This document shows, one piece after another, positions 733 through 10,347 of a DNA stretch of 64,000 nt. Numbering within the stretch: the stretch's first letter is position 1; each line of letters opens with the position of its first letter. The translations under genes and the position numbers were made by a program. A model generated the notes under the pieces. That model was not told where the DNA came from. It saw only the letters and a program-made list of their open reading frames with translations, and searched no databases. Source of the stretch: Octopus sinensis. Taxonomy: Eukaryota. The stretch covers positions 27,218,001-27,282,000 of the forward strand of contig NC_043020.1 in NCBI RefSeq assembly GCF_006345805.1, given 5' to 3'.

Positions 733-1419
733 TCAGATAAAAAAGCCGAAAGTATCCCAGTCAAACCCACCCATCCTCAATTTATAGACCTGCATGGCAA
801 CGTTCCCTCCGCAGTAGTGCTTCGAATTTTCACTGCATGGTCTATTGCAGGCCAGGTCATTTCTTTGATGTCTCTTGTAGTTTGGTCGAAGGGTGGCACT
901 ACAGTAGCAGACATTACCTTTGATCACACCAGCATAAGGTTTCCTCCGAACAGCACAGAGGTAACAGCAGCGGGAAATGCTCATTTTTTCTGCTTTATTC
1001 TGTGGTAATTTTCGCCTGGCATAACTCTGCATGATGTTCTTCCTGTCGGATCTCTGTTGTGTGTTGAAAGGATAGCAACCCAGATATGCTGCCAGTGGCG
1101 TCTCCCGATTAAGCGAATAGATAAGGGCATGCAGCTGCAAGTATTGCGGCCCCCCACAGGTTTTAGCCTGGTTGGTACATGGTATGTTGCAATTATTTGA
1201 ACTTGCGCCGTGTGATGAAAGATCTGTTTCAAGCAGCTTGTCGGCACACCAGCACTGTGTCCCCAAATACAAACCAGCGAATCTTCTAAACCAGCTGTGG
1301 CAAGAATATACACACCGTTGGATGGTCATGAAATTCATGTCTATGTATAATTCGGCAAATTTATTCAGGCTGTTAGTGGTCTGGTTGAAGCATCCAACGT
1401 AGACATTACCTTCCACAGA
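733..1419 (-). CDS. Last exon of secreted WSC-domain protein (WSC domains 2 and 3, stop at 733-735)
   Basis: ORF with two WSC cysteine patterns (YVGCF...C...C...FAGL...CWC...C...C...CGG; YLGCY...CC..C...YAG...CYC...C...C...CGG). Polypyrimidine/CAG acceptor at 1420-1421 in phase 0. AATAAA about 30 nt after the stop (plus-strand tttatt 698-703). Confidence 0.85.
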   Translation of the reverse strand, partial: SVEGNVYVGCFNQTTNSLNKFAELYIDMNFMTIQRCVYSCHSWFRRFAGLYLGTQCWCADKLLETDLSSHGASSNNCNIPCTNQAKTCGGPQYLQLHALIYSLNRETPLAAYLGCYPFNTQQRSDRKNIMQSYARRKLPQNKAEKMSISRCCYLCAVRRKPYAGVIKGNVCYCSATLRPNYKRHQRNDLACNRPCSENSKHYCGGNVAMQVYKLRMGGFDWDTFGFFI

Positions 1420-1564
1420 CTGTAAATAAAGAGAAAAATAAATAAATAGAAATAACAAATACCATATATATATAGGAGAGTTTACGAAAAAAAGCAAAAG
1501 ACGAAGACAGGTGGTGTACAAAACAAACAGATGTATTAGTATAACGCTCAGGAATAGAAAAAGT

Positions 1565-1600
1565 CTTTTATGTTTCGAGCCTATGCTCTTCTACAGAAAG
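1565..1600 (-). ncRNA. Degenerate hammerhead-like motif (copies 2112-2147 and 2652-2687; relative at 12893-12928 on plus)
   Basis: CTTT-CTGTAGA-A-GAGC-ATAG-GCTC-GAAA-CA-TA-AAAG; stem I CTTT/AAAG; core position A6 is replaced by U. Confidence 0.35.
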
Positions 1601-1661
1601 GGACATAGAAAAAAACAAGGATAGAAAAAAATGTGTGTAGTAGCTAACGATCTATCATGGC

Positions 1662-1698
<37 letters not shown>

Positions 1699-1827
1699 TA
1701 GGGACAGTTTACGAAAAAAACCCAAAAGATGAAGACAGGTGATGTACAAAACTAACAGATGTATGTGTGTACCGTTGGCGATTTTTTTTCCTCTGTCTTC
1801 CCTTCTCTGGATCTTTCCTTCTCCTAT

Positions 1828-1862
1828 GTTTCCGACGAAGAGCTCCGCTCGAAATATTAAAC
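1828..1862 (+). ncRNA. Minimal hammerhead-like motif (second copy 2377-2410)
   Basis: GTTT-CCGACGA-A-GAGC-TCC-GCTC-GAAA-TA-TT-AAAC; stem I GTTT/AAAC; palindromic AATATT stem III; U4C core variant. Confidence 0.45.
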
Positions 1863-1984
1863 CCTCCTTCTTTCCTTCTTTCCTGAGCGTCCAATAATAC
1901 TATATTTGTTCCATGTCCTCACGTTGTGTTTTTTTGTGTTTTCTTGTTTGGATTAACTATATATATATATATATAATATATATA

Positions 1985-2023
<39 letters not shown>

Positions 2024-7222: not shown

Positions 7223-7771
7223 AAAGTATGGACTTGACAGAGCAAAAAATTGGTATGACCACAAACCTGAAGGAATCGTCGAAAATAGAAATGCAAAGAC
7301 CCTGTGGGACTTTATGATTCAGTGCGACCATGAGATAGAGAATAAGAAGCCAGACATAGTCTTAATTGAGAAAGAAAGCAAACTATGCTGGATCATAGAT
7401 ATAGCATGCCCAGCTGACAACAAGCTATGCGATAAGGAAGAAAGAAAAGTGGAAAGATATGACAGGTTAGCTTGGGAGGTTAAGCAGTTGTGGTCGATGA
7501 AAAAGGTGGTAGTGGTACCAATAATTGTCGGAGCCCTGGAAACAGTGAGCAGAAATCTCGAGAAGTACGTTGAACAAATAGGGGCTGCAATAAGGGTGAA
7601 GCACTTGCAGAAAACAGCACTGCTTGGAACCGCTCGAATACTCCGGACAGTGCTCGAAAAATAAGAGGTGCTACCTTAGTTCACTGGTAGTGAACAGCTG
7701 ACATTGTAATACATCTCCAGCGTTAGAAGCTACGCAAAGGCAATGATAATAATAATAATAATAATAATAAG
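7223..7771 (+). mobile_element. R4/Dong-like non-LTR retrotransposon 3' fragment (restriction-like endonuclease domain)
   Basis: LWDF...KPDIV...IIDIACP...K..RY..L...VPIIVGAL matches the RLE PD-D..K domain; (AAT)n tail at 7744-7770. Confidence 0.85.
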
Positions 7772-8881
7772 CAGGCAAAGAAATATCTAAGTGAATTCCA
7801 AACACAACAAATTTCAGAATTAGACCTACTGGAAACAAGCACAGAAAAAGTTAAGTATATGAAAACCCGGGTTAAAACTGCTGCCTTAGATATTCTTACT
7901 GATAAATGACAAGAAAAACCTCTCAGTGACAAATACCCAAAGAGAGCTAATAATGCCGATGTTGACAAAGCCCTTACCCATCAATGATTAGTATCTTCTG
8001 GCTTAAAATCAGAAGCAGAAGAGTTTATCATAGCAGCCCAAGATCAATACCTACCTGCAAGGAGCTACGAGGCCAACATATTAAAGAACGGCAGTAGACC
8101 AACATGTCGTGTGTGTAAACAACAAAATGGAACCGTCGATCATGTTGTCTCCATGTGCAGTCTTCTTGCGCCTACAGAATATCTCAACAGGCATGATAGA
8201 GCAGCTGAATATGTTCACTGGATAATTTGCAAAAACCTGGACTTGCCCCATGATAAAAACTGGTGGGAGCACAAACCAACTCCAGTGCTTGAAAATGATT
8301 ACATCTCACCCCTCTGAAACTTCACCGTTCAAACCGACAGAAAGATAGATGCGAATAGGCCAGACATTATATTGAAGGACAAAAACCATGCCTTCTCATC
8401 GATTTGTCTGTCCCAATTGACGTAAATGGTTTTGTCAAGACCTACCAGACACTGAGCAAGTATAAAGATCTTGAAATAGAAATCGGCAAAATGTGGAACC
8501 TCAAGACTAAAACAGTATCTGTTGTCATAGGTGCCATAGCAAAAGGGGCCAATTGCTACATAGCACAGATGCCAGGAAATCCAAAAATGGCAAATGGCAG
8601 AAATTTAAAAAATAGTGTTCATGGGAACTGCCCATATCCTACGTAAAATACTGTCTACGTAATCCCAAATGTTAAAACAAACTCATAACTATTTTATGCT
8701 TTCTTAAACATTCTATAGAACAATAATTGGTGCAAAACCAAATATATGGCACCCTAGTCATGATGCCAAATTGAACTTCTAGCTTGTCTCTTGAGGTCTC
8801 TGGGTGAAACTTGGAGCCAATTTGTACAAATACAAAGCAAAAATCAAACAGGCAATAATAATAATAATGATAATAATAATA

Positions 8882-8930
<49 letters not shown>
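7772..8930 (+). mobile_element. Second, degraded R4/Dong-like 3' fragment (CCHC knuckle + RLE)
   Basis: CRVCKQQNGTVDHVVSMC knuckle; RPDIIL..., KYKDLEIEIGKMWNLKTKTV.VVIGA; internal stops and frameshifts; (AAT)n tail. Confidence 0.85.
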
Positions 8931-9389
8931 GATGGTATAAAAGATGGGCTACAGCAAATATTCTGCTCAATACCACAGATTTGCTTGTCAGTTGTTTGAC
9001 CTTAACCAGTAGTGGCTGACGATATGTGCATCTCTGATCACGAGCAGAAGTAGTGGGGGAGCATCATAGCCATGTGTTGAGAGAGATTCTTTGGGGTTTG
9101 AATAATTCACCTTTGGAAACAGGGGTGTTTCGTTCAACATCCTTAAGCAACCCTTATTCAGGGACCTTTTGAGCGGGATGGGCTACTCAACCTGAAGAAA
9201 ATTGTAACTGGGCCCCAACTGCAAGGTCATGTGCTGTTTATCTTGATATGAGATCACCATGTCGCGCACATATGGTTGTGATGCATGTGCCTAGTGTACC
9301 CTTATCAGACGGGTAGTCATGATGGGTATACTGGGCTTCGTATATTTTACCCCAGTGTCACTTTGATGGCATGAACTGCTCTCTCACTC

Positions 9390-9432
<43 letters not shown>
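8930..9432. repeat. Unclassified ~460-bp element flanked on both sides by (AAT)n
   Basis: Moderate-GC block between (AAT)n arrays ending at about 8928 and starting at about 9390. Confidence 0.4.
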
Positions 9433-9434
<2 letters not shown>

Positions 9435-9618
9435 CTCTCTAAAATGTTCGGTTTGGCACAAGACTAGCAATTTTGAGGAGCAGGGTATAAACGATTGTAT
9501 GCCCCCTCACATACACGAAAATATGTTCACGCTTACACGGACACACTCTCACACACATGTAGACACACATGTACACATCGCCCACATTTAAACAAATAAA
9601 ATCACTTGTTTTCCTTAC

Positions 9619-10347
9619 TTTCGAAGATGGCGTCATAGTCTCATAGATCCGTACGGTATTCTTTTGGCGACATTTCGACTTCTTTGGGCTGCATATTTTC
9701 GAACAGTCGACGTTTTTAATAGCCTTCTTGGTCGGGGGTCTATTGCTTCCGCAAAAGCAAACCTTCCCATTGTACACCACGGCATACTTCAAGCCGTAAA
9801 GGCGACATCGAAACATGCAGCTTTTTTGTGATTTATTCAAAACAACTAATTGAAGATTCATTGTTTTTTTCAGTCTTCGTGAATTTGTGATTTTGAAACA
9901 ACCGATAATTCTACCGTCATTATTATTCAGAGATTCGTCGTTTGGTTTAACCCTGGCCTTATGCTTTTCGGCTTTTGCAGCTTTTTCGGCCTTCTCGGCT
10001 TTCGCAATTTTTTCGGCCATTTTGGCTTTTGCAGCTTTTTCGGCTTTTGCAGTCTTTTTAGCCTTCGCAGTTTTTACGGTCTTTTCGGCTTTTGCAGCTT
10101 TTTCGACCTTTTCGGTTTTTGCAATTTTTTCGGTTTTTTCGACTTTTACAGTTTTATCGGCCCTTTCGGCTTTTTCGATCTTCCTGGCTTTTTCGGTTTT
10201 TTCGGCCTTCTCGGCCTTTTCGGCTTTTTTTGTGCAATGACTTGGAACAAATATATCTCCGCTGATTAGTAATAGAATGATCAACTGTGTGGTTATGAAT
10301 TCACGAGAGAAGAGGTTATTATTTTTACTACTATTAATAGATATCAT
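9619..10347 (-). CDS. First exon of secreted WSC-domain protein: signal-peptide-like N-terminus, (A/T)EK repeat, WSC domain 1
   Basis: ATG at 10347; hydrophobic LIILLLISGDIFVPSHC; about 30 AEK/AAK/TEK triplets; WSC pattern IIGCF...C..RC...YA....VCFC...C...C...C. AAA|GTAAGG donor at 9619/9618 is phase 0 and matches the acceptor at 1419, giving a 471-aa product. Confidence 0.8.

Follow-up and report, generated by a model that had tools for sequence, protein, structure and literature searches.

The 64,000-nucleotide stretch of Octopus sinensis DNA analyzed here (contig NC_043020.1, positions 27,218,001 to 27,282,000, assembly GCF_006345805.1; referred to as the window) carries near its start a predicted minus-strand gene whose product would combine an N-terminal leader, a lysine-rich repeat and three WSC domains. 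The coding sequence lies in two exons that are separated by a long intron (Table 1). The start ATG is at position 10347, with an in-frame stop codon 6 codons upstream. The last base of exon 1 is 9619, which is followed by the donor GT of the intron at 9618-9617, and the first base of exon 2 is 1419, where the acceptor TTTATTTACAG is followed by TCT. The splice sites are canonical, both exon boundaries are in phase 0, and the joined exons give an open frame with a 471-residue product. A preliminary description of this DNA had proposed that two minus-strand open reading frames (ORFs) join in this manner, and the exon coordinates, splice sites and phase are all as it claimed. The same description stated that ORF-based annotation would split the gene in two, which is true, but trivially so for any intron-containing gene; no annotated protein in the collections searched matches.

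Table 1. Location and content of the features found in the window (.. separates first and last position; a slash marks an exon boundary).
Feature	Position	Strand	Remarks
Coding exon 1	9619..10347	-	729 nt = 243 codons: leader, AEK repeat, WSC1; 3' end AAA/GTAAGG
Intron	1420..9618	-	8,199 nt, GT..AG, phase 0
Coding exon 2	733..1419	-	687 nt including TGA at 735..733; 228 codons: WSC2, WSC3, conserved tail
Leader	10237..10347	-	residues 1-37, MISINSSKNNNLFSREFITTQLIILLLISGDIFVPSH; from hydropathy and alignment with P0169 and P0170
Lys-rich repeat	9952..10233	-	residues 39-132; net charge ~+19; predicted alpha-helical
WSC domain 1	9673..9906	-	Pfam envelope residues 148-225; 38.5 bits, E=1.4e-9; 8 Cys
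WSC domain 2	1150..1401	-	Pfam envelope residues 250-333; 52.7 bits; 8 Cys
WSC domain 3	805..1086	-	Pfam envelope residues 355-448; 48.9 bits; 9 Cys (CC doublet)
WSC3 end and family-specific aromatic tail	736..804	-	..MQVYKLRMGGFDWDTFGFFI; near-invariant across all relatives
Candidate polyadenylation signal AATAAA	698..703	-	30 nt 3' of stop; putative function
Intron ORFs ..PDIVLIEKESKLCWIIDIACPADNKL..	7314..7664, 8111..8646	+	no significant Pfam match
Short interspersed element, multiple copies	~150-620, ~3400-3750, ~30440-30900, ~49060-49300, others	both
(GAA/GGA)n purine-rich microsatellite	10650..10940		300-600 nt upstream of WSC gene ATG
C2H2 ORF, 250 aa	11120..11872	+	C-terminal zinc fingers (Pfam zf-C2H2_4, Zn_SUZ12-like); just upstream of WSC gene
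Fragmented non-LTR (long terminal repeat) retrotransposon	13901..16172	-	GC content 0.55 vs ~0.40 elsewhere; two RVT_1 and one zf-RVT pieces
Selenocysteine tRNA (anticodon TCA)	17916..18002	-	Rfam RF01852, 77.7 bits vs gathering score 47; ARAGORN agrees
Tepsin VHS/ENTH-like	40054..40230 in ORF 40054..40527	+	N-terminal 57 residues; PF25827, 33.8 bits vs 27, E=3.3e-8

The gene model draws on four comparative observations made in the relatives L001, L002, L003 and P0170. L001 is a 1,010-bp genomic contig of a close relative (Logan SRR11869391) that covers exon 2. Its nucleotide and amino acid identity to exon 2 of the window is 87% and 86%, respectively, and the acceptor (TTTGCAG/GCT), the stop codon and 17 of the 17 cysteines are kept, with identity dropping in the intron and past ~100 nt of the 3' flank. 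L002, a 20.6-kb part of an ENA contig (176 kb) from a much more distant relative, has both exons as well. Exon 1 there (6902..7366) codes for a classical signal peptide, a linker of 30 residues and WSC1 and ends in AAG/GTGAGT; TTTTAG precedes exon 2 (9902..10606), which comprises WSC2, WSC3 and the tail. The L002 intron of 2,535 nt interrupts the gene at the identical codon and in the same phase (TPSSK/SVEG in the window, TPAGK/SGFH in L002). P0170 is an exon-1 ORF of another relative that has the same signal peptide and runs into the intron after ..TPAGK. L003 is a 1,147-bp Logan contig (SRR27666065) from another species in which WSC1, WSC2 and WSC3 form a single unbroken reading frame over the junction (..IPDEK/TGFNS..), followed by the homologous stop and 3' flank. 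The simplest reading of L003 is that of a spliced mRNA. Even as an intron-less genomic copy, L003 would show the joined protein to be the conserved unit.

Other observations also bear on the extent of the gene. The alignment of the relatives over the junction is gap-free, so that no coding exon is required in between, and the position of the stop is kept in four taxa (L001, L002, L003 and P0006). The first in-frame ATG of exon 2 occurs only in the middle of WSC2; an upstream exon is therefore required and exon 2 is not self-standing. A tblastn search with the joined protein revealed no further WSC-like sequence anywhere in the window, the intron included. Additional exons with a transmembrane segment or an enzyme domain, which the preliminary description had named as a finding that would speak against its model, were looked for and none was found; the start at the signal peptide and the conserved stop bound the coding sequence. 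Overall, the two-coding-exon gene is very probably real. Two points weigh against it: the junction 9619/1419, strongly supported as it is, comes from homology and not from an Octopus sinensis transcript, and L003, instead of being a cDNA, might conceivably derive from a genomic copy that lacks the intron.

The Pfam WSC model (PF01822) matches the whole protein with 113.6 bits (E=5e-33) in three stretches, and each of the three domains passes the gathering score of 27.8 bits alone, in agreement with the domain count given earlier. The eight cysteines characteristic of a WSC domain are present in all three. The CGG motif is kept in WSC2 and WSC3 and lost from WSC1. The whole protein has a net charge of +53 and an isoelectric point (pI) of 9.8. 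By part, the charge is +19 for the repeat, +19 for the WSC1 segment (residues 136-243), -0.4 for WSC2 and +15 for WSC3. The protein is as strongly cationic as first described, the charge being carried by the repeat, WSC1 and WSC3; the description of all three WSC domains as rich in lysine and arginine fails for WSC2, which is neutral. Catalytic, sulfotransferase, kringle and CUB domains gave no Pfam match in the protein at E<=1. With no second hydrophobic segment either, and with the stop conserved as described above, the protein does lack a downstream transmembrane anchor or catalytic module, as had been proposed. With regard to the PAN/apple-like fold expected of WSC domains, Foldseek matched the low-confidence structure model best to the sensor domain of yeast Wsc1 (7pz2, TMt 0.61, E=1.9e-3) and to the Kremen WSC domain, and the best match in the PDB by sequence was the Kremen1 WSC domain (E=0.002).

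Hydropathy analysis placed the only strongly hydrophobic stretch of the protein, FITTQLIILLLISGDIFV, in the leader; no hydrophobic segment besides this one was found in the protein. The leader aligns with those of P0169 and P0170 (MRN..RNFIL..LVL..) and is homologous to them; the signal-like leader of the preliminary description is supported. The leaders of L002 and P0170 have a 12-residue hydrophobic core and a small-residue cleavage motif (..VIRTVTS followed by FYF). Since these orthologous leaders are classical, the leader of the window protein is probably a cleaved signal peptide. At the other end of the protein, the C-terminal tail was considered as a signal for a glycosylphosphatidylinositol anchor and rejected, as it is only ~13 residues long and the relatives end in polar ..HIETG or ..HIETQ.

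The repeat behind the leader has a core of 30 consecutive in-register units of 9 nt, (A/T/I/V)-(E/A/V/K)-K, with no indel, and the AEK-type repeat of about 90 residues described earlier is thereby recovered at residues 39-132. Tandem Repeats Finder reported a period of 9 bp and 29.4 copies at 9965..10229. The first and second positions of the lysine codon are near-invariant (entropy 0.21 and 0.63 bits), its wobble position varies between A and G (1.14 bits), and four different alanine codons occur. In the repeat, the two other sense frames are interrupted by 2 and 4 stops, and the coding frame by none. The 9-bp unit was not found outside exon 1 in the window (9 matches, all in the exon, vs 0 expected). 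The in-register units, the lysine and alanine codon pattern, the stop-free coding frame and the absence of the unit elsewhere in the window indicate that the repeat is translated in the frame of the WSC domains. A dispersed satellite was rejected as an explanation of the repeat because the unit occurs in the window only inside exon 1.

Pairing of glutamate at position i with lysine at i+4 is the stabilizing pattern of Ala/Glu/Lys helical peptides and of ER/K single helices. In the repeat, 16 of the 17 acidic residues have a lysine or arginine at i+4, vs 6.0 +/- 1.8 in shuffled sequences. AlphaFold2 placed helices at residues 42-125 when run with no alignment and at residues 37-89 and 99-132 when run with an alignment of six sequences. 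The helical spacer suggested in the preliminary description is predicted by both runs, at a low predicted local distance difference test (pLDDT) score of ~51-76. A long charged alpha-helix is the most likely form of the (xEK)n segment, whose ~90 residues would span ~13 nm if helical.

Comparison with the relatives separates an older part of the gene from a younger one. L002 is 43% identical to the window protein overall and ~50% identical in exon 2. Exon 1 evolves faster than exon 2 throughout, with an identity of 26% in WSC1 vs 50% in exon 2 between the window and L002. The ratio of nonsynonymous to synonymous substitution rates (dN/dS) between exon 2 and L001 is 0.12 (NG86) or 0.22 (YN00). 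Between L002 and L003, where dS is >1.2, the ratio is 0.24 in the part from exon 1 and 0.10 in that from exon 2. Judged from these alignments, the signal peptide and three WSC domains are the core of an older conserved gene under purifying selection. The AEK repeat is absent from L002, L003, P0169 and P0170, which have FYF(K/D)(G/D)DEFFQQGF.. between the signal peptide and WSC1 instead. These repeat-less relatives (the L002 and L003 family) have a net charge of +12 to +13 and a pI of 8.8, vs +53 in the window protein. The charge of WSC1 rises from +5 in the relatives to +19 in the window and that of WSC3 from +3 or +8 to +15, and WSC2 is neutral throughout. As the homologous leader of the relatives is without the repeat, the comparison places an in-frame expansion of the 9-bp unit, immediately after the signal peptide, in the window lineage. 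L001 has the high charge of WSC3 too, so that this charge predates the split between the species of L001 and that of the window.

By this comparison, the new part consists of the AEK repeat and the extreme charge, both of which were added to an older gene in this lineage. The combination of a signal peptide with tandem WSC domains only is, on the proteins compared, common in fungi and animals and is not new. The preliminary description did not recognize the architecture, which overstates its novelty; signal-plus-WSC-only proteins are widespread, the three-WSC lectin of Serendipita indica being one example, and only the repeat and the charge are unusual. The gene family is absent from current annotation, and the window copy records a datable innovation, in which a coding 9-bp unit expanded and the charge rose fourfold. 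For charged single-helix spacers, the repeat would moreover offer a natural model that is simple.

HMMER, run exhaustively over 1.84 billion representatives, returned 1,616 matches. Beyond a small close family, these are generic multi-WSC proteins with ~25-33% identity, many of which consist of WSC domains only. Fungal matches include proteins of Tilletia, Oculimacula, Chytriomyces and Serendipita indica, and a Diplonema protein has 13 matched stretches. Among the animal matches are the Mytilus galloprovincialis protein XP_076108178 (five WSC domains and a kringle) and hemipteran proteins with WSC repeats and GH16. No named or annotated protein more than ~33% identical was found in ~15 billion sequences, and neither the exact joined protein nor the exon-1 read-through ORF nor six other ORFs of the window occurred in the 15-billion-sequence collection. 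The close family members come from unannotated Logan and ENA assemblies only. One of them, P0169 (6902..7573 of L002), is a deposited call of 223 residues that reads two TGA codons as tryptophan into the intron; this read-through is artefactual and stems from applying a gene caller for prokaryotes or metagenomes to eukaryotic DNA. The L002 locus also has a SCAN/integrase-type retroelement gene at its start. A literature search for WSC proteins of octopus, squid, cuttlefish or cephalopods returned nothing beyond general WSC papers.

The surroundings of the gene are rich in repeats. The intron holds SINE-like copies, microsatellites and ORFs that look like retroelement tails; of the short interspersed element, one copy lies in the intron and one just 3' of the gene. 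The two intron ORFs resemble the C-terminal region of an invertebrate retroelement ORF2, with no Pfam support, and they explain some of the increase in intron length, which is 2.5 kb in L002 and 8.2 kb in the window. The purine-rich microsatellite upstream of the ATG may influence the promoter region or else be polymorphic. In its N-terminal part, the C2H2 ORF looks like a retroelement ORF tail. In the non-LTR retrotransposon, the RVT pieces lie in three different frames, so that the reverse-transcriptase ORF is broken. The selenocysteine tRNA lies ~7.6 kb upstream of the ATG of the WSC gene; no synteny with L002 was found for it, as there is no tRNA within the 20.6 kb of that locus. To judge from its domain match, the tepsin-like segment probably represents coding exon 1 of a tepsin-like gene, and the remainder of its ORF enters a TG/CA microsatellite. 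Part of the minus-strand ORF at 49060..49518 resembles a C-terminal exon of the DCXR or carbonyl-reductase type of short-chain dehydrogenase; the whole ORF gave no Pfam match at E<=0.01.

On balance, the product of the WSC gene would be secreted and act like a multivalent lectin, with an added affinity for polyanionic matrices or surfaces that comes from its charge. The leader would target the protein for secretion as a cleaved signal peptide. The three WSC modules would then jointly bind long-chain polysaccharide in a multivalent and non-catalytic manner, like the triple-WSC lectins of fungi; the proposal of multivalent polysaccharide binding follows from analogy with S. indica WSC3 and with the pairing of WSC and GH16 in insects. 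The polycationic helix and the basic WSC surfaces would add electrostatic affinity for sulfated or acidic glycans, mucus, matrix or microbial surfaces, and the protein could finally coat, cross-link or agglutinate its target. Should the protein be abundant in a secretion such as mucus, egg coat, saliva or haemolymph, it could account for polysaccharide binding or antimicrobial activity there. The antimicrobial, mucus, egg-coat and skin roles put forward in the preliminary description are conjecture. A further step, that a triple-WSC lectin was turned into a polycation in one lineage and gained a new activity, such as the killing or agglutination of microbes through joint glycan recognition and attack on membranes or polyanions, or covalent matrix cross-linking, is doubtful; if true, the conversion would be a clean natural case of a functional helical module arising from a coding microsatellite.

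Several points weigh against the secreted lectin. Animal WSC domains, such as those of Kremen and polycystin-1, are not all lectins. WSC1 is strongly diverged, with 26% identity to its counterpart in L002 and without the CGG motif, and may bind something other than the ligand of WSC2 and WSC3. The AlphaFold2 models are of low confidence, with a pLDDT of 37.5 when run with no alignment, where the WSC domains are unusable, and of 49.9 with six family sequences. The comparison that assigns the repeat to the window lineage covers only exon 2 in the close relative L001. In addition, the leader has a Kyte-Doolittle 19-residue maximum of 1.91 (residues 17-35), above the usual threshold for a transmembrane segment, and its hydrophobic segment is long enough for a membrane anchor.

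This last point leads to a different topology, in which the leader is an uncleaved signal anchor and the protein a type II membrane protein. The AEK helix would then be a stalk of ~12-14 nm that displays the WSC domains at the cell or Golgi surface, as a receptor or sensor that is the topological mirror of fungal Wsc1 and resembles the N-terminal part of WSCD1/2. Type II proteins commonly have a stalk right after the anchor, which together with the hydropathy maximum speaks for such a protein. The leaders of L002 and P0170 are nevertheless typical of cleaved signal peptides, and the uninterrupted hydrophobic core of the window leader is just LIILLLI, followed by SGD, which makes a membrane-anchored form improbable. 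The repeat can also be read as the module of a structural or adhesive matrix component. Its Lys/Ala helix (K-x-x-K) would be covalently cross-linked by lysyl oxidase, transglutaminase or quinone tanning, and the WSC domains would fasten the protein to a scaffold of polysaccharide, for instance chitin or mucopolysaccharide in an egg case, a cuticle or mucus. An analogue is offered by the KA cross-linking domains of tropoelastin. Lysine occupies each third residue in 28 of 31 triplets of an alanine-rich predicted helix, although glutamate stands at half of the middle positions, unlike in the KA domains of elastin. Secreted oyster proteins of mantle or matrix type have been reported to include some with WSC domains (bioRxiv 10.1101/2023.01.19.524809). 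However, the relatives are without the repeat, so that any role in cross-linking would have been acquired recently, and a matrix component of this kind is rather unlikely.

It is very unlikely that the locus is decaying, with the repeat of exon 1 as a runaway microsatellite and the joined ORF no longer expressed. The divergence of WSC1 with the loss of its CGG motif, the growth of the intron to 8.2 kb by inserted repeats and the lack of an identical or annotated protein in the collections would fit such a locus. Yet the frame is open over 471 codons, the splice sites are intact, and 8 of 8 cysteines in WSC1 and 17 of 17 in exon 2 are kept. The low dN/dS of 0.12-0.22 against the close relative also opposes decay, as do the perfect 9-nt register of the repeat, its synonymous-type variation and the fact that the coding frame alone is stop-free. 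The secreted lectin-like protein is thus preferred here.

Several known systems share features with such a protein. ER/K single alpha-helix (SAH) spacers and Baldwin-type Ala/Glu/Lys peptides are known charged helices to which the repeat can be likened. Like these, the repeat is rich in alanine, has Glu-Lys pairs at i and i+4 throughout and no hydrophobic seam, and its predicted uninterrupted helix would lie between the N-terminus and the folded domains. It differs in that ~54% of its residues are charged vs 75% or more, its net charge is +19 vs ~0, its 3-residue period is strict and it is extracellular, and its helicity is predicted only, at low confidence. Kremen shares the WSC domain and was rejected, as the window protein has no kringle, CUB domain or C-terminal transmembrane segment. 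A sulfotransferase of the WSCD1/2 type was also rejected, there being no sulfotransferase domain and a conserved stop directly after the WSC3 tail. Yeast Wsc1, the best structural match of the model, likewise has a WSC head on an extended stalk. It differs in having one WSC domain, a C-terminal glycosylated stalk rich in serine and threonine, a transmembrane helix and a cytoplasmic tail, whereas the window protein has three WSC domains and an N-terminal charged-helical stalk and is without a C-terminal transmembrane segment or tail. A Wsc1-type sensor was rejected because the Ser/Thr stalk, the transmembrane segment and the tail are missing.

Among invertebrates, WSC proteins have been reported from sea-anemone venom, and glycerotoxin has a WSC pair (PMC6627431; PMC5336659). 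These proteins, the Mytilus protein XP_076108178 and the hemipteran GH16 proteins are likewise extracellular with tandem WSC domains, which are often rich in lysine. They differ from the window protein by extra modules (kringle, GH16, EGF/CCP) or another copy number, are without the AEK repeat, and are at most ~33% identical. The layout of secreted WSC-only lectins is shared: the core of the window protein and the repeat-less orthologue L002 both consist of a signal peptide, with predicted cleavage, and three WSC domains. The WSC3 protein of Serendipita indica, as cited in PMC7816849, is a three-WSC lectin that binds long-chain beta-1,3-glucan (Wawra et al., 2019). As far as it is described there, it is, like the core of the window protein, secreted and non-catalytic and consists of three tandem WSC domains only, its multivalency serving the binding of long-chain polysaccharide. 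The multi-WSC proteins of S. indica are among the distant matches of the window protein, and the identity of ~25-33% to the fungal multi-WSC proteins is no evidence of orthology. Compared with the fungal WSC lectins, the window gene is an animal gene and is set apart by the intron between WSC1 and WSC2, the N-terminal lysine repeat, the aromatic tail and the high positive charge.

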